NCBI RefSeq assembly: GCF_046119375.1
Contig: NW_027362769.1
Coordinates: 385,950,001 to 386,014,000 of the forward strand
Reading direction: 5' to 3'
Origin: Phyllobates terribilis
Taxonomy: Eukaryota
DNA: 64,000 nucleotides
Below the pieces are notes generated by a model that saw nothing but the letters and a program-made list of their open reading frames with translations, was not told where the DNA came from and made no database searches. Made by a program: the position numbers and the translations under genes. Numbering within the stretch: the first letter of the stretch is position 1; each line of letters starts with the position of its first letter. This document shows positions 1 through 61,214 of this stretch, one piece after another.

Positions 1-3000
1 AGTTACATCCTGTATTATACTCCAGAGCTGCACTCCCTATTCTGCTGGTGCAGTCACTGTGTACATACATTACATTACTGATCCTGAGTTACATCCTGTA
101 TTATACCCAAGAGCTACACTCACTATTCTGCTGGTACAGTCACTGTGTACATACATTACTGATCCTGAGTTACATCCTGTATTATACTCCAGAGCTGCAC
201 TCACTATTCTGCTGGTGCAGTCACTGTGTACATACATTACATTACTGATCCTGAGTTACAACCTGTATTATACTCCAGAGCTGCACTCACTATTCTGCTG
301 GTACAGTCACTGTGTACATACATTACTGATCCTGAGTTACATCCTGTATTATACTCCAGAGCTGCACTCACTATTCTGCTGGTGCAGTCACTGTGTACAT
401 ACATTACATTACTGATCCTGAGTTACATCCTGTATTATACTCCAGAGCTGCACTCCCTATTCTGCTGGTGCAGTCACTGTGTACATACATTACTGATCCT
501 GAGTTACATCCTGTATTATACTCCAGAGCTGCGCTCACTATTCTGCTGGTGCAGTCACTGTGTACATACATTACATTACTGATCCTGAGTTACAACCTGT
601 ATTATACTCCAGAGCTGCACTCACTATTCTGCTGGTACAGTCACTGTGTACATACATTACTGATCCTGAGTTACATCCTGTATTATACTCCAGAGCTGCA
701 CTCACTATTCTGCTGGTACAGTCACTGTGTACATACATTACTGATCCTGAGTTACATTCTGTATTATACTCCAGAGCTGCACTCCCTATTCTGCTGGTGC
801 AGTCACTGTGTACATACATTACATTACTGATCCTGAGTTACATCCTGTATTATACCCCAGAGCTGCACTCACTATTCTGCTGGTGCAGTCACTGTGTACA
901 TACATTACATTACTGATCCTGAGTTACCTCCTGTATTATACTCCAGAGCTGCACTCACTATTCTGCTGGTGCAGTCACTGTATACATACATTACATTACT
1001 GATCCTCAGTTACCTCCTGTATTATACTTCAGAGCTGCACTCACTATTCTGCTGGTGCAGTCACTGTGCACATACATTACATTACTGATCCTGAGTTACA
1101 TCCTGTATTATACTCCAGAGCTGCACTCACTATTCTGCTGGTGGAGTCACTGTGTACATACATTACATTACTGATCCTGAATTACATCCTGTACTATACT
1201 CCAGAGCTGCACTCACTATTCTGCTGCTGCAGTCACTGTGTACATACATTACATTACTGATCCTGAGTTACATCCTGTATTATACTCCAGAGCTGCACTC
1301 ACTATTCTGCTGGTGCAGTCACTGTGTACATACATTACTGATCCTGAGTTACATCCTGTATTATACTCCAGAGCTGCGCTCACTATTCTGCTGGTGCAGT
1401 CACTGTGTACATACATTACATTACTGATCCTGAGTTACATCCTGTATTATACTCCAGAGCTGCACTCCCTATTTTGCTGGTGCAGTCACTGTGTACATAC
1501 ATTAACTTACTGATCCTGAGTTACATCCTGTATTATACTCCAGAGCAGCACTCACTATTCTGCTGGTGGAGTCACTGTGTACATATATTACATTACTGAT
1601 CCTGAGTTACATCCTGTATTATACTCCAGAGCTGCACTCACTATTCTGCTGGTGCAGTCACTGTGCACATACATTACATTACTGATCCTGAGTTACATCC
1701 TGCATTATACTCCAGAGCTGCACTCACTATTCTGCTGGTGCAGTCACTGTGTACATACATTACATTACTGATCCTGAGTTACATCCTGTATTATACCCCA
1801 GAGCTGCACTCACTATTCTGCTGGTGCAGTCACTGCGTACATACATTACATTACTGATCCTGAGTTACATCCTGTATTATACTCCAGAGCTGCACTCACT
1901 ATTCTGCTGGTGCAGTCACTGTGTACATATATTACATTACTGATCCTGAGTTACATCCTGTATTATACCCCAGAGCTGCACTCACTATTCTGCTGGTGCA
2001 GTCACTGTGTACATACATTACATTACTGATCCTGAGTTACATCCTGTATTATACCCCAGAGCTGCACTCACTATTCTGCGGGTGCAGTCACTGTGTACAT
2101 ATATTACTGATCCTGAGTTACATCCTGTATTATACTCCAGAGCTGCGCTCACTATTCTGCGGGTGCAGTCACTGTGTACATACATTACATTACTGATCCT
2201 GAGTTACATCCTGTATTATACTCCAGAGCTGCGCTCACTATTCTGCGGGTGCAGTCACTGTGTACATACATTACATTACTGATCCTGAGTTACATCCTGT
2301 ATTATACTCCAGAGCTGCACTCACTATTCTGCTGGTACAGTCACTGTGTACATTCATTACATTACTGATCCTGAGTTACATCCTGTATTATACCCCAGAG
2401 CTGCACTCACTATTCTGCGGGTGCAGTCACTGTGTACATACATTACATTACTGATCCTGAGTTACATCCTGTATTATACTCCAGAGCTGCACTCACTATT
2501 CTGCTGGTACAGTCACTGTGTACATACATTACATTACTGATCCTGAGTTACATCCTGTATTATACTCCAGAGCTGCGCTCACTATTCTGCTGGTGCAGTC
2601 ACTGTGTACATACATTGCATTACAGATCCTGTGTTACATCCTGTATTATACCCCAGAGCTGCATTCACTATTCTGCTGGTGCAGTCACTGTGTACATACA
2701 TTACATTACTGATCCTGAGTTACATCCTGTATTATACCCCAGAGCTGCATTCACTATTCTGCTGGTGCAGTCACTGTGTACATACATTACATTACTGATC
2801 CTGAGTTACATCCTGTATTATACCCCAGAGCTGCACTCACTATTCTGCGGGTGCAGTCACTGTGTACATACATTACATTACTGATCCTGAGTTACATCCT
2901 GTATTATACCCCAGAGCTGCACTCACTATTCTGCTGGTGCAGTCACTGTGTACATACATTACATTACTGATCCTGAGTTACATCCTGTATTATACTCCAG

Positions 3001-3371
3001 AGCTGCACTCACTATTCTGCTGGTGCAGTCACTGTGTACATACATTACATTACTGATCCTGAGTTACATCCTGTATTATACTCCAGAGCTGCACTCACTA
3101 TTCTGCTGGTGCAGTCACTGTGTACATACATTACATTGCTGATCCTGAGTTACATCCTGTATTATACTCCAGAGCTGCACTCACTATTCTGCTGGTGCAG
3201 TCACTGTGTACATACATTACATTGCTGATCCTGAGTTACATCCTGTATTATACTCCAGAGCTGCACTCACTATTCTGCTGGTGCAGTCACTGTGTACATA
3301 TATTACATTACTGATCCTGAGTTACCTCCTGCATTATACTCCAGAGCTGCACTCCCCATTCTGCTGGTGCA
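1..3371. repeat. 86-bp tandem repeat array (~39 copies in window, open at the left edge), with 81-bp variants
   Basis: Unit ATCCTGTATTATACTCCAGAGCTGCACTCACTATTCTGCTGGTGCAGTCACTGTGTACATACATTACATTACTGATCCTGAGTTAC; spurious ORF starts recur every 86 nt (808/894, 1066/1152/1238); 81-bp units lack one CATTA. Confidence 0.98.
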
Positions 3372-9499: not shown

Positions 9500-11128
9500 C
9501 AGTTGTGCTCAAAAGTTTACATACCCCGACAGAATTTTTCCTTTCTTGGCCTTGTTTCAGAGAATATGAATGACAACAAAAAAAAACTTTTTCTCCACTC
9601 ATGGTTATTGGTTGGGTGAAGCCATTTATTGTCAAACTACTGTGAAAAAGAGAACACAATCTTAATGACAACCAAAAACATCCAAATGACCCTGATCACA
9701 AGTTCACATACTCCAGTTCTTAATACTGTGTATTGCCCCCTCTAACATCAAAGTCTTTTGTGGTAGTTGTGGATGAGGTTCTTTATTTTCTCAGATGGTA
9801 AAGCTGCCCATTCTTCTTGGCAAAAAGCCTCCAGTTCCTGTAAATTCCTGGGTTGTCTCTCATGAACTGTGCGCTTGAGATCTCCCCACAGTGGCTCAAT
9901 GATATTGAGGTCAGGAGACTGAGATGGCCACTCCAGAACCTTCACTTTGTTCTGCTGTAGCCAATGACAGGTCGACTTGGCCTTGTGTTTTGGATCGTTG
10001 TCATGTTGGAACGTCCAAGTACGTCCCATGTGCAGCTTCCGGGCTGATGAGTGCAAATTTGCCTCCAGTATTTGCTGATAACGTGCTGCATTCATCTTTC
10101 CTTCAACTTTTACCAAGTTCCTGTGTCTTTGTAGCTCGCGCATCTCCAAAACATCAGCGATCCACCTCCATGCTTTACTGTAGGAATGGTGTTCCTTTCA
10201 TCATAGGCCTTGTTGACCTCTCTCCAAAAGTAACGTTTAGGGTTGTGGCCAAAAAGTTCAATTTTGGTCTCATCACGCCAAATTACCTTGTTCCAGAAGT
10301 TTTGAGGCTTGTCTCTGTGCTGTTTGGCGTATTGTAGGCGAGATACTTTGTGGCATTTGCGCAGTAATGGCTTTCTTCTGGCGACTTGACCATTCAGCCC
10401 ATTTTTCTTCAAGTGCCTCCTTATTGTGCATCTTGATACAGCCACACCACTAGTTTTTAGAGAGTTCTGAATTTCAGCTGATGTTATTCATGGGGTTTTC
10501 TTTGCATCCCAAACCAATTTTCCTAGCAGTTGTGGCCGAAATTTTTGTTGGTCTACCTGACTGTGGTTTGATTTTTACAGAGCCCCTGATTATCCATTTG
10601 TTAATCACAGTTTGAACCCTACTGACTGGCATTATCAATTCCTTGGATATCTTTTTGTATCCCTTTCCTGTGTTATACTGTTCAACTACCTTTTCCCGTA
10701 GATCCATTGACAATTCTTTGACGTTTCTGGATTGTGAGGCATGGGGAAAGCAAGCGGCTGGAAGAAAGATGCAAGAGTCTGTCTGGATCCCAGAAACTCA
10801 CTCAGCTTTTATGCACACACTGATAAGTAAACAGGTCACAGGTAAGAATGGTACCTTTAGTAGCCATTCAAACCCATTTGTGTCAAATTCTGTACATGTT
10901 ATCAGGCCAAAATCACCCGGGTATGTGAACTTTTGATCAGGGTCATTTGGATGTTTTGGTTGTCATTATGATTTAAAAAGAGAAAACACAGTAGTTTGAC
11001 AATAAATGGCTTCACCCAACCAATAACCATGAGTGGAGAAAAAGGTTTTTTGTTATCATTCATATTCTCTGAAACAAGGCCAAGAAAGGAAAAATTCTGC
11101 CGGGTATGTAAACTTTTGAGCACAACTG
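9500..11128 (-). mobile_element. Tc1/mariner DNA transposon, IR/DR (Sleeping Beauty-like) type, 1629 bp
   Basis: TA|CAGTTGTGCTCAAAAGTTTACATACCC ... GGGTATGTAAACTTTTGAGCACAACTG|TA; ~215-bp terminal inverted repeats, each with an outer (AAAGTTTACATAC) and inner (CAAGTTCACATAC) direct repeat; TA duplication at 9498-9499 and 11129-11130. Confidence 0.95.
9720..10752 (-). pseudogene. Inactivated Tc1 DD34E transposase
   Basis: Three frameshifted ORFs: 10474-10713 paired-like HTH (DLREKVV..GKGYKKISKEL..GRP); 10110-10445 (RRKPLL, WRDETK, TVKHGGGSLMFW); 9748-10149 (QHDNDPKH, WPSQSPDLNIIE). Small deletion near the C-terminus; start codon inverted. Confidence 0.93.
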
Positions 11129-11760: not shown

Positions 11761-12140
11761 GTTGCCTACTAGGTTCAGTACCACGTTGGGTAGTAGGTTG
11801 AACATTAGGTTGAGTACTATGTTCAGTCATAGTCAGTATTAGGTTCAGTACCATGTTCCGTACTAGGTTCGGTCACAGGTTTAGTACTAGGTTCCGTCAT
11901 AGATTCAGTGCTAGGTTGGGTACTATGTTGCCTACTCGTTTCAGTACCACGTTGAGTAGTAGGTTGAACATTAGGTTGAGTACTAGGTTCCGTCATAGAG
12001 TCAGTATTAGGTTCAGTACCATGTTCCGTACTAGGTTCGGTCATAGGTTGGGTACTACTTTGGGCACTAGGTTTGGTACTAGGTTCAGTACCATGTTGGG
12101 TACTAGATTGAGTAATAGGTTCGGTCAGAGGTTGGGTACT
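11761..12140. repeat. Degenerate 12-bp minisatellite in intron 11
   Basis: Recurrent TAGGTTCAGTAC / TAGGTTGGGTAC / TAGGTTCCGTCA; a ~80-nt block is duplicated (11825 vs 12000). Confidence 0.85.
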
Positions 12141-12143
12141 CAC

Positions 12144-12206
12144 GGTGCGGTTCCCATGGTTACAGGACGGTCACATGAGATGCACTTTACTCTCTCGAAC
12201 AGTTTC
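12144..12206 (-). CDS. C16orf96: C16orf96-like exon 11 (KLFERVKCISCDRPVTMGTAP)
   Basis: TGTATTCACAG| acceptor; ACC|GTGAGT donor; conserved CxSCDRP motif of the C16orf96/QRICH2 family. Confidence 0.93.
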
Positions 12207-12520
12207 CTGTGAATACACAATGTTTGATAAGTGCACACCGTCACAATATAAAGCTCCCGGCACGGTCTATCACAAATCTTAGGATTTTGGCAGGTCTGTA
12301 TGCGGCAGTTTCGCCGCAGCCCCTGACTTCATATACACCCGGTGTCAGTCTTTACTGTAATATTAAAATTACCTTCCTGTTGGGAATGAACAGTTACATG
12401 GCGCCCCCTATAGGAAAGGGGGCTGTGAATATAATTCTACTTTACGGCAGTTCTGCTCTCAGTCATTGAAGAGCATCACCCGTGCCCCCACTACGCCCCC
12501 TACGTGCGCACACCACTCAC

Positions 12521-12639
12521 TTCCTGAAGCCCGCCGCCCCGTCTGGATCGAAGGTCTGGCTGGAGCTGAGATGCTTCTTCAGGAATTTCCAGAGCTCCTC
12601 CAGGTCCTTGTGAACGGAGTCCAAGTCCGAGCGGCTCAA
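12521..12639 (-). CDS. C16orf96: C16orf96-like exon 10 (LSRSDLDSVHKDLEELWKFLKKHLSSSQTFDPDGAAGFR)
   Basis: CCTTCTGCATCTTCTAG| acceptor; GAA|GTGAGT donor; cf. LVHSDLDPLKKEMEEVWK...DPDSAAGFR. Missing from the ORF track. Confidence 0.92.
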
Positions 12640-12957
12640 CTAGAAGATGCAGAAGGTGCGGAGATGTGACAAAGGAACAGGCTGCACAGCAGCACAGAGT
12701 ATTTTAGGAGAGGAATGTGTCAATGACAGGTGTAGTTGTCCGCCACTCATGATGATGTTACGGAGGGATATGGAGACAAGTGTGCAGTCATACACTGAGA
12801 GTCATTTAATGGAAGGAGCAGAACTGCCAGCAGCACAGAGTATTTTAGAAGAGGAGTGTGTTAGAGATAACAATGTTTGCCTCTATCCCCGGCGGCCTGA
12901 TGACGGCATCCAGCGTTTCCTAGAGATGAAGTTTGCTCAGCCGGGAACAAAGGTCTG

Positions 12958-14187
12958 AGAGCACAGGGCGCCAGTGACGGGAGGACAGGGCGCCGGTGAG
13001 GGGACAGGGCTCCGGTGAGAAGGGGACAGGGCTCCGGTGAGAAGAGGACAGGGCGCCGGTGAGAAGAGGACAGGGCTCCGGTGACAGGAGGACAGGGCTC
13101 CGGTGAGAAGAGGACAGGGCTCCGGTGAGAGGAGGACAGGGCTCCGGTGAGAAGAGGACAGGGCTCCGGTGAGAAGAGGACAGGGCTCCGGTGACAGGAG
13201 GACAGGGCGCCGGTGAGAGGACAGAGCGCCGGTGAGGGGACAGGGCTCCGGTGCGAAGAGGACAGGGCTCCGGTGAGAGGAGGACAGGGCTCCGGTGAGA
13301 AGAGGACAGGGCTCCGGTGACAGGAGGACAGGGCTCCGGTGACAGGAGGACAGGGCGCCGGTGAGAGGACAGAGCGCCGGTGAGGGGACAGGGCTCCGGT
13401 GAGAAGAGGACAGGGCGCTGGTGAGAGGAGGACAGGACGCCGGTGAGGGGACAGGGCTCCGGTGAGAAGAGGACAGGACGCCGGTGAGAGGATGACAGGA
13501 CGCCGGTGAGGGGACAGGGCGCCGGTGCGAGCACAGGGCGCCGGTGAGGGCACAGGGCGCTGGTGAGGGCACAGGGCACTGGTGAGGGCACAGGGCGCCG
13601 GTGAGGGGACAGGGCGCCGGTGAGAGCACAGGGCGCTGGTGAGGGGACAGGGCGCCGGTGAGAGCACAGGGCGCCGGTGAGAGCACAGGGTGCTGGTGAG
13701 GGCACAGGGCGCTGGTGAGGGGACAGGGCGCCGGTGAGAGCACAGGGCGCCGGTGAGAGCACAGGGCGCTGGTGAGGGCACAGGGCGCTGGTGAGGGAAC
13801 AGGGCGCTGGTGAGGTGACAGGGCGCCGGTGAGAGCACAGGGCGCCGGTGAGAGCACAGGGTGCCGGTGAGGGCACAGGGCGCTGGTGAGGGGACAGGGT
13901 GCCGGTGAGGGCACAGGGCGCTGGTGAGGGGACAGGGCGCCGGTGAGAGCACAGGTCGCTGGTGAGGGCACAGGGCGCTGGTGAGGGGACAGGGTGCCGG
14001 TGAGAGCACAGGTCGCTGGTGAGGGCACAGGGCGCTGGTGAGGGGACAGGGTGCCGGTGAGAGCACAGGTCGCTGGTGAGGGGACAGGGTGCCGGTGAGA
14101 GCACAGGGCGCCGGTGAGGGGACAACACCGGTGAGAGCATAGGGCGCCGGCGAGGGGACAGGACGCCGGTGAGAGAACAGGGCGCCA
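12958..14187. repeat. GC-rich 20-23 bp minisatellite in intron 9
   Basis: About 60 units of ACAGGGCGCCGGTGAG(GGG/AGC/AAGAGG); longer AGGAGG-type units on the left, 20-mers on the right. Confidence 0.95.
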
Positions 14188-14934: not shown

Positions 14935-15008
14935 CTAAAAGTGAGGAAAATATAAGAACGATCGAGCCGCAGAGGAAACATCACTGACGAGCTCTCACGA
15001 GACGCTAC

Positions 15009-15094
15009 CTTCCGATTCTCAGCGAACAGACTCTCCACATCCTGCCGGACACTGCGCAACTGCTGGAGCAAATCCTCAGGAATACGGTTCTTAC
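15009..15094 (-). CDS. C16orf96: C16orf96-like exon 6 (GKNRIPEDLLQQLRSVRQDVESLFAENRK)
   Basis: Acceptor GATTGCAG|GTAAGA; donor AAG|GTAGCG; 86 nt, phase 1/0, continuing the frame from exon 5; resembles QRICH2 KRTIPPELQEQL. Confidence 0.82.
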
Positions 15095-15105
15095 CTGCAA
15101 TCAGA

Positions 15106-58736: not shown

Positions 58737-58887
58737 CCATCTCTATGTCGAGCCTCTTCAGCTCTTGTTCTATATCCAGGACCCGTCTCTCCAGACCCTC
58801 GTGTTTTCCGGGCAATGCCCCCAGACTGTTTAGGATCTTTTTTACATTGCGCTGTTTGGTCTCATTGCTTAGTGTCCAGTCTTCGCT
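58737..58887 (-). CDS. C16orf96: C16orf96-like exon 5 (SEDWTLSNETKQRNVKKILNSLGALPGKHEGLERRVLDIEQELKRLDIEM+G)
   Basis: Acceptor TATCATCACCAG|; donor ATGG|GTGAGA (phase 1); aligns with recalled [26 protein letters not shown]...ANMG. Confidence 0.8.
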
Positions 58888-60818: not shown

Positions 60819-61214
60819 CTTGTGGACTCCATCTTCGTTGATCTCCGTCTTCTTCTTGAGCTGCATTAGCTGCCACATCTCCTCCACAGGTTTCCTTTGG
60901 GATTGACTGGCTTGTAAAAGACTGGTGGAGCTTGGCAAAGAATCTAGATGGTGGAGCCTGGACTCCATCTGGGCCACCTTGTCCAGCAGCTGGTGGAACA
61001 GCGTGGATGGTTTCCCTGAGTCGTCCATGTTAATCGGCCCCGGCTGTATGAATTCCCTCTCCTCCTGGGACAACTTCCTCCGCACGTCCACCACCTGCAG
61101 GTGGTCCATGAGCCCGTAGAGTAGGGAGTAGAGCGCATTGAAATTTACTGCACCAAGTTCTGGAGAACCTATTGCTAAGTTCAGGAGCTCCTTGAAGGAC
61201 ACGGAGCCTGGCAT
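60819..61214 (-). CDS. C16orf96: C16orf96-like exon 1 (MPGSVSFKELLNLAIGSPELGAVNF...EDGVHK, 132 aa)
   Basis: Kozak GCCGCCTCCACCATG; donor AAG|GTCAGA; upstream acceptor TCTCGTCTAG| at 61235. Confidence 0.92.

Follow-up and report, generated by a model that had tools for sequence, protein, structure and literature searches.

Exons that recreate a 5' splice site when joined to the preceding exon are well described in human genes, where this applies to 3.6% of exons (6,837), 21.7% of genes contain at least one such exon and 93.8% of these exons are constitutive (PMC6224609). A putative annotated RS-exon is one whose junction donor is as strong as 90% of real donors, which corresponds to a MaxEntScan score of at least 5.52 in human (PMC6224609). 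In mammalian cells, the exon junction complex keeps such donors repressed, and recursion requires that the upstream intron be removed first (PMC6224609). In flies, the outcome depends on how strong the donors are relative to each other, on exonic elements and on prior splicing, and the competition between the regenerated and the downstream donor decides the inclusion of Ubx-type exons, with prior splicing of the upstream intron favoring inclusion (PMC8605326). Reporter work showed that a strong junction donor combined with a weak own donor favors skipping (PMC6224609, PMC8605326). We found no report in the literature of recursive splicing studied in amphibians; one poison-frog genome paper has recursive splicing in its reference list only, within a discussion of long introns (PMC6278860).

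The DNA analyzed here (the window) is a stretch of 64,000 nucleotides from Phyllobates terribilis, and on its minus strand lie at least the first nine coding exons of the P. terribilis C16orf96 homologue, which is a DUF4795 gene. The assignment to the C16orf96/DUF4795 family is based on a Pfam score above the threshold and on orthology to named homologues. The open reading frame of exon 9 matched PF16043 (Pfam DUF4795) with E = 4.1e-10 and 39.8 bits against a cut-off of 34.8, and each of the nine exon peptides was 100% identical to P0184 (XP_073504694.1, annotated as P. terribilis C16orf96 homolog isoform X2) in tblastn and blastp searches. Splice junctions were read directly; the nine exons sum to 1257 nt without a stop and every intron is GT-AG. 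Exon 1 (61214-60819) begins at an ATG, and the ATG at 61214 was taken as the start codon because residue 1 of most homologues aligns with residue 1 of the exon 1 peptide. Exons 2 (60528-60424), 3 (60226-60146) and 4 (59809-59723) are followed by exon 5 (58887-58737; 151 nt), which is 100% identical to P0184, ends in phase 1 (...GAG ATG G) and has the donor TGG|GTGAGA. Intron 5 (15095-58736) is 43,642 nt long. Exon 6 (15094-15009; 86 nt), whose peptide (G)KNRIPEDLLQQ... lies at the N-terminal edge of the DUF4795 region, is separated by a 74-nt intron 6 (14935-15008), with the pyrimidine-rich acceptor ...tttcctcacttttag, from exon 7 (14934-14824; 111 nt). Exon 8 (14716-14642) and exon 9 (14474-14310) complete the model.

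Exon 6 opens with a donor-like motif. The minus strand reads ...ctgattgcag|GTAAGAACCG... with the acceptor AG at 15096-15095, and the acceptor and the motif are juxtaposed as TTGCAG|GTAAGA (15089-15100). Joining exon 6 to the end of exon 5 (GAGATGG|gtgaga, last base 58737) gives TGG|GTAAGA at the ligated junction. Both sequences are exactly those of the original prediction, which had also described the exon's own donor, AAG|GTAGCG (15003-15011; GT at 15008-15007), as mismatched at +4 and +5; the reading bears this out, and the donor departs from the consensus at +6 as well. The duplex energy with the 5' end of U1 (in kcal/mol) was used as a proxy for donor strength in place of MaxEntScan. The ligated TGG|GTAAGA scored -9.2 versus -6.2 for the exon's own donor, in agreement with the claim that the reconstituted donor is the stronger of the two. 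It contains GT and forms six contiguous Watson-Crick pairs with U1, and its energy equals that of the stronger among the real donors of exons 1-9, which ranged from -4.6 to -10.0. At -11.0, where the full consensus gives -11.8, the unspliced form CAG|GTAAGA outscores every other donor-like 9-mer in this part of the gene; it had been overlooked earlier. A GT donor was recreated at the junction of exons 5 and 6 and at none of the other seven of the eight modeled exon-exon junctions. By its predicted pairing with U1, TGG|GTAAGA (CAG|GTAAGA when unspliced) is a sequence-competent donor, which places exon 6 in the putative annotated RS-exon class. The exon is annotated in the P. terribilis RefSeq models P0184 and P0283 and included in all frog orthologues, and its junction donor reaches the strength of this class by the U1-energy proxy (-9.2), the human threshold being on the MaxEntScan scale.

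Use of the reconstituted donor would delete 86 nt and shift the frame, as had been predicted. Joining exon 5 to exon 7 yields ...EM-G-Q-G-stop, with a TGA at 14926-14924, three codons into exon 7, that lies 100 nt upstream of the next junction and has many junctions downstream. Under the 50-55-nt rule, a stop so far upstream of a junction marks a transcript for nonsense-mediated decay, and the transcript without exon 6 is therefore a predicted target of this pathway.

The arrangement shares features with each of the described systems. Like the RS-exons of Blazquez et al. (2018; PMC6224609), exon 6 is a coding exon whose ligation recreates a donor, whose own donor is weaker and whose skipping through the recreated donor would damage the mRNA. 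Unlike those exons, the frog exon is known here from sequence alone, and its downstream intron is just 74 nt, which may permit the earlier removal of that intron. In those parts of the work of Sibley et al. (2015) that are recounted in PMC6224609 and PMC5126111, cryptic RS-exons resemble the frog locus in having an acceptor followed by GTAAG in a gene with a very long intron. As recounted there, their sites lie inside the long intron, which they segment, and leave no trace in the mRNA, whereas the frog motif lies at the end of the intron and exon 6 is conserved, in frame and annotated. Exon 6 thus falls outside the definition of a cryptic RS-site, being an annotated, coding and conserved exon with the site at the intron end. 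The original prediction of a recursive-splicing exon stands as far as the 3' splice site directly before a donor motif is concerned, but the site is not inside the long intron and belongs to a coding exon. The mI and mII microexons of Drosophila Ubx and other expressed RS-exons (Hatton, 1998; Joseph et al., 2021, PMC8605326) are similar to exon 6 in that an expressed exon opens with a donor motif. Wobble positions are conserved throughout the Ubx microexons (PMC8605326), whereas the synonymous sites of the frog exon drift at the background of the gene, and, unlike the Ubx microexons, skipping of the frog exon is out of frame. Lastly, use of CAG|GTAAGA would remove a 160-nt nested intron and regenerate TTGCAG|, a likeness to the nested or multi-step splicing of dystrophin (PMC4829307) that is read here from the DNA only.

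To determine the distribution of the motif, protein searches were run, which returned about 30 C16orf96 homologues from anurans. Nine of these had usable genomic loci, which were fetched and their exons mapped singly, and the sample compared was ten orthologues plus the window. TGG|GTAAGA was identical in six of eight neobatrachians, a set that includes Ranoidea and Hyloidea: P. terribilis (intron 5 of 43,642 nt), Ranitomeya imitator (9,291 nt), Bufo gargarizans (1,097 nt), Leptodactylus fuscus (1,444 nt), Dendropsophus ebraccatus (1,324 nt) and Aquarana catesbeiana (10,302 nt). Conservation of GGT-AAG in orthologues with a short intron had been named in advance as an outcome that would refute the original prediction, and the Bufo, Leptodactylus and Dendropsophus sequences are of this kind. 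Dendrobates tinctorius (intron 5 of 6,901 nt) reads TGT|GTAAGA, where a change of Gly to Cys weakens the ligated form alone, which drops to -4.3. The motif was lost by synonymous change in Anomaloglossus baeobatrachus (TCG|GAAAGA, Gly codon GGA; 5,532 nt) and in Spea bombifrons (TCG|GCAAGG, Gly codon GGC; 933 nt), and Bombina bombina (3,687 nt) has TCA|GTAAAA, which encodes Ser-Lys. Two of the four dendrobatoids have therefore lost or weakened the motif. By this distribution, the strong motif is ancestral to neobatrachian frogs, dating at least to the common ancestor of the sampled ranoids and hyloids.

All 10 orthologues read have an exon 6 of 86 nt and conserve its peptide, and intron 6 of the other hyloids is 68-81 nt. 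The own donor of the exon had a U1 duplex energy of -5.6 to -6.6 and was never GTRAG in all 10 species; the donors among the ten anurans were GTTGGT, GTCGGT, GTTTGT, GTGACG, GTAGCG, GTAATG and GTACGA (for example, L006:4760-4768 and window 15003-15011). As judged from these orthologues, the weakness of the exon 6 donor predates the Bombina split. One Hyperolius locus (L002) was rejected as an exon 6 orthologue; it is a partial second copy with exon 1- and exon 2-like pieces alone. Short annotated proteins of about 207-215 amino acids that correspond to the exon 1-2 part only were present in Hyperolius riggenbachi (L002:35254-36360) and Rana temporaria (P0301). Both frogs also have full-length orthologues, and the short proteins look like partial duplicates.

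Much of the motif is accounted for by the peptide that it encodes. Exon 6 starts with GTAAGA because the phase-1 peptide Met-Gly-Lys-Asn is coded ATG G|GT AAG AAC. Seven of the nine motif bases (-3 to +1, +3, +4 and +6) are set by the peptide Met-Gly-Lys-(Asn/Met/Ile), and the free positions are solely +2, the third base of the Gly codon, and +5, the third base of the Lys codon. Given Gly-Lys at a phase-1 junction, the probability of GGT-AAG from the codon usage of the gene was 0.15 in Phyllobates, 0.31 in Bufo and 0.23 in Aquarana. AGGTAAG occurred five times in the window versus 12 times expected from shuffles. The synonymous background was taken from the same nine exons without the split codon, in this one gene and in five lineages (Phyllobates, Bufo, Leptodactylus, Dendropsophus and Aquarana). 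The third base was identical in all five lineages at 21 of 100 four-fold codons of conserved residues, and nine of 22 conserved Lys codons were AAG in all five. The joint background probability for the two free sites is 0.21 x 0.41, or about 0.09, which is not significant. With this background and with two losses or weakenings among the dendrobatoids, the conservation of the motif did not exceed what coding constraint and neutral inertia provide. Such a comparison suggests that the motif arises from the Gly-Lys codons and that the exon is probably ordinary, and one donor-recreating exon in a multi-exon gene is unsurprising.

Annotated proteins were consistent with inclusion of exon 6. The annotated isoforms of P. 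terribilis, D. tinctorius and Anomaloglossus contain exon 6 in all cases and differ elsewhere. No short product of exon 6 skipping was detected among database proteins with P0184:1-274 as the query, a weak negative in that nonsense-mediated decay and clustering could hide such products. The sole close match to this query, P0300, was rejected as a skipped product; it reads into intron 5. P0300 comes from a 995-nt transcript-like Logan contig of an unsampled hyloid, whose nearest named relative is Dendropsophus (88% identity). In P0300, exons 1-5 are joined and the frame continues through two codons of intron 5 (...LEM-G-E); intron 5 was therefore still present when introns 1-4 had been spliced. 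This transcript hints that intron 5 is removed late and is a weak pointer against the upstream-intron-first order.

Intron 5 is filled by a 35/36-bp satellite (15112-58665, minus strand) with about 1,230 copies and 93% matches by TRF, whose edge is 17 nt from the acceptor AG of the intron. The last satellite unit is truncated, and its C-rich tract is the one that the real acceptor uses. About 900 of the units contain a pyrimidine tract and then ACAAG, a weak look-alike of an AAG acceptor. The satellite was rejected as a source of competing donors; there is no GTAAG in the 43.6 kb and the sole GTGAG is the donor of intron 5 itself. Intron 5 also contains the satellite in D. tinctorius (193 copies), Anomaloglossus (155 copies), Leptodactylus (40 copies), Bufo (26 copies) and Dendropsophus (about 20 copies), and in R. 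imitator 42 and 13 copies flank a 7.3-kb non-repeat insertion. The insertion (L004:5108-12407) is 46% G+C, contains no N and is probably a transposon. The satellite intervals are window 15112-58665, L003:5115-11958, L004:3645-5107 and 12408-12877, L005:7979-13435, L006:3685-4591, L007:5136-6540, and L008:11140-11649 and 12075-12266. Seven hyloids of five families thus have one orthologous satellite with a 35-bp unit in the same orientation, confined to intron 5 within the fetched loci. The 35-bp satellite was absent from the orthologues of Aquarana (ranoid), Spea (pelobatoid) and Bombina (bombinatorid).

The satellite unit itself is highly conserved. Its consensus was identical at 35 of 35 positions among four dendrobatoids, at 34 of 35 when these were compared with Bufo and Leptodactylus and at 33 of 35 with Dendropsophus, and both the mixture of 35- and 36-bp lengths and a C/T polymorphic position recurred in every satellite-bearing species. 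Phyllobates matched Bufo, Leptodactylus and Dendropsophus at only 47-54% of positions in intron 6 and in the unique 5' flank of intron 5, and at 55-61% of four-fold sites. The consensus of an array that evolves in concert is expected to drift at about the mutation rate. The unit is near-invariant while the neighboring sequence has diverged, which suggests that it is under constraint or is fed by an unknown homogenizing source. Long-lived satellites are known in hyloid frogs, PcP190 being an example (PMC11675491), and a published description of the 35-bp satellite of intron 5 was not found in the literature. We regard the conservation of the satellite unit as a more unusual result than the donor motif.

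We think it likely that exon 6, a member of the putative RS-exon class, is ordinary and constitutive and is skipped at noise level at most. By analogy with the work on mammals and flies, the motif might be blocked by an exon junction complex upstream of the exon 5-6 junction, or, alone or together with this, the tiny intron 6 might be removed first; first removal of an intron of 68-81 nt, as in the hyloids, could well disfavor use of the motif. Occasional use would yield an exon 5-7 mRNA with an early stop that is subject to nonsense-mediated decay, which would amount to splicing noise. Two routes would converge on this one out-of-frame mRNA. Either exons 5 and 6 are ligated and recursive splicing then removes exon 6 and intron 6 (route a), or the intron 6 acceptor is paired, with intron 5 still present, with CAG|GTAAGA as a distal alternative donor (route b), in which case the intron would be 160 nt (exon 6 plus intron 6) and TTGCAG| would be regenerated directly before exon 7. 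Three features count against an ordinary exon: the exon's own donor, which is weak in all 10 species, falls short of the motif by about 3 kcal/mol; CAG|GTAAGA could be used with the intron 6 acceptor before an exon junction complex exists; and the exact 9-mer was kept across the ranoid-hyloid split. A rival explanation is a conserved neobatrachian switch for unproductive splicing, in which the permanently weak natural donor has to compete with the strong one that opens exon 6; by route a or b, exon 6 would be lost from a regulated share of the transcripts, which would then be degraded by nonsense-mediated decay. This explanation draws on the identity of TGG|GTAAGA in six of eight neobatrachians of Ranoidea and Hyloidea, on the energies of the motif (-9.2 ligated and -11.0 unspliced), on an own donor of -5.6 to -6.6 without GTRAG in all 10 species, on the stop placed 100 nt ahead of the next junction by skipping, and on the finding that exons which respond to loss of the exon junction complex tend toward weak donors (PMC6224609). 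We nevertheless consider it unlikely. Synonymous conservation of the motif is within the background (about 0.09), and neither its loss in Anomaloglossus nor its weakening in D. tinctorius came with visible compensation in the own donor. The Phyllobates gene has three other donors that are as weak as that of exon 6 or weaker, and skipping was absent from the annotated isoforms and from the search for short products. A different function for the first two bases, in which GT is kept for recognition of the acceptor or as part of an exonic enhancer and not as a donor, seems quite improbable. U2AF35 reportedly prefers AG|GU, GT opens exon 6 in eight of 11 species, and in Bombina (Ser, A|GT) and D. 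tinctorius (Cys, T|GT) the preceding base changed and GT was kept; against this, Spea (GC) and Anomaloglossus (GA) manage without GT, and phylogenetic inertia would give the same pattern.

The original prediction had proposed a built-in switch tied to the giant satellite intron, in which the length or satellite content of intron 5 governs use of the reconstituted donor, and in Phyllobates the motif does end a 43.6-kb intron with satellite up to 17 nt from the acceptor AG. This coupling was not supported by the comparison of orthologues, in which the motif and the satellite dissociate in both directions, and we regard it as extremely unlikely. Aquarana has the motif without the satellite (intron 5 of 10.3 kb), Anomaloglossus has the satellite without the motif and D. 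tinctorius has the satellite with a weakened motif, while Bufo, Leptodactylus and Dendropsophus keep the motif beside arrays of just 0.7-1.4 kb. The identical 9-mer spans sizes of intron 5 from 1.1 kb to 43.6 kb, with the satellite present or absent. Because of this two-way dissociation, the motif must be older than the Phyllobates expansion; by the same comparison, the 43-kb expansion is an event of the Phyllobates lineage laid over an old arrangement, with no specific relation between motif and satellite. A broader proposal, that the motif, the weak own donor, the tiny intron 6 and the conserved satellite form a regulatory module in hyloids for production of productive mRNA of the C16orf96 homologue, is in our judgment very improbable. 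In such a module, the repeat RNA might attract or titrate an RNA-binding factor, or slow the pairing of the ends of intron 5, and could thereby bias exon 6 inclusion versus out-of-frame skipping.

On present evidence, exon 6 is best regarded as one of the few percent of vertebrate exons that begin like a donor by happenstance, and the apparent tie to the satellite intron is a single-species coincidence. If the motif were used, exon 6 would be a first amphibian case of exon removal by recursive or nested splicing. The orthologues provide natural controls: Anomaloglossus and Spea are synonymous knock-outs of the GT, and D. tinctorius weakens the ligated form only.

Other repeats were present in the window. 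A 19-bp G+C-rich minisatellite (12963-14186) of 61.5 copies with higher-order periods of 38 and 57 bp is located just downstream of exon 9 on the gene strand, presumably in intron 9; the proline/serine-rich open reading frames of 360-430 codons found there are products of the minisatellite and not genes. The 86-bp tandem repeat at 1-3371 (39.6 copies, 94% matches) runs off the start of the window and generates spurious long open reading frames on both strands. The downstream part of the host gene also contains a broken Tc1/mariner (Sleeping Beauty-like) transposase (9748-10713, minus strand), a remnant with three open reading frames that match HTH_SB, HTH_Tnp_Tc3_2 and DDE_3.
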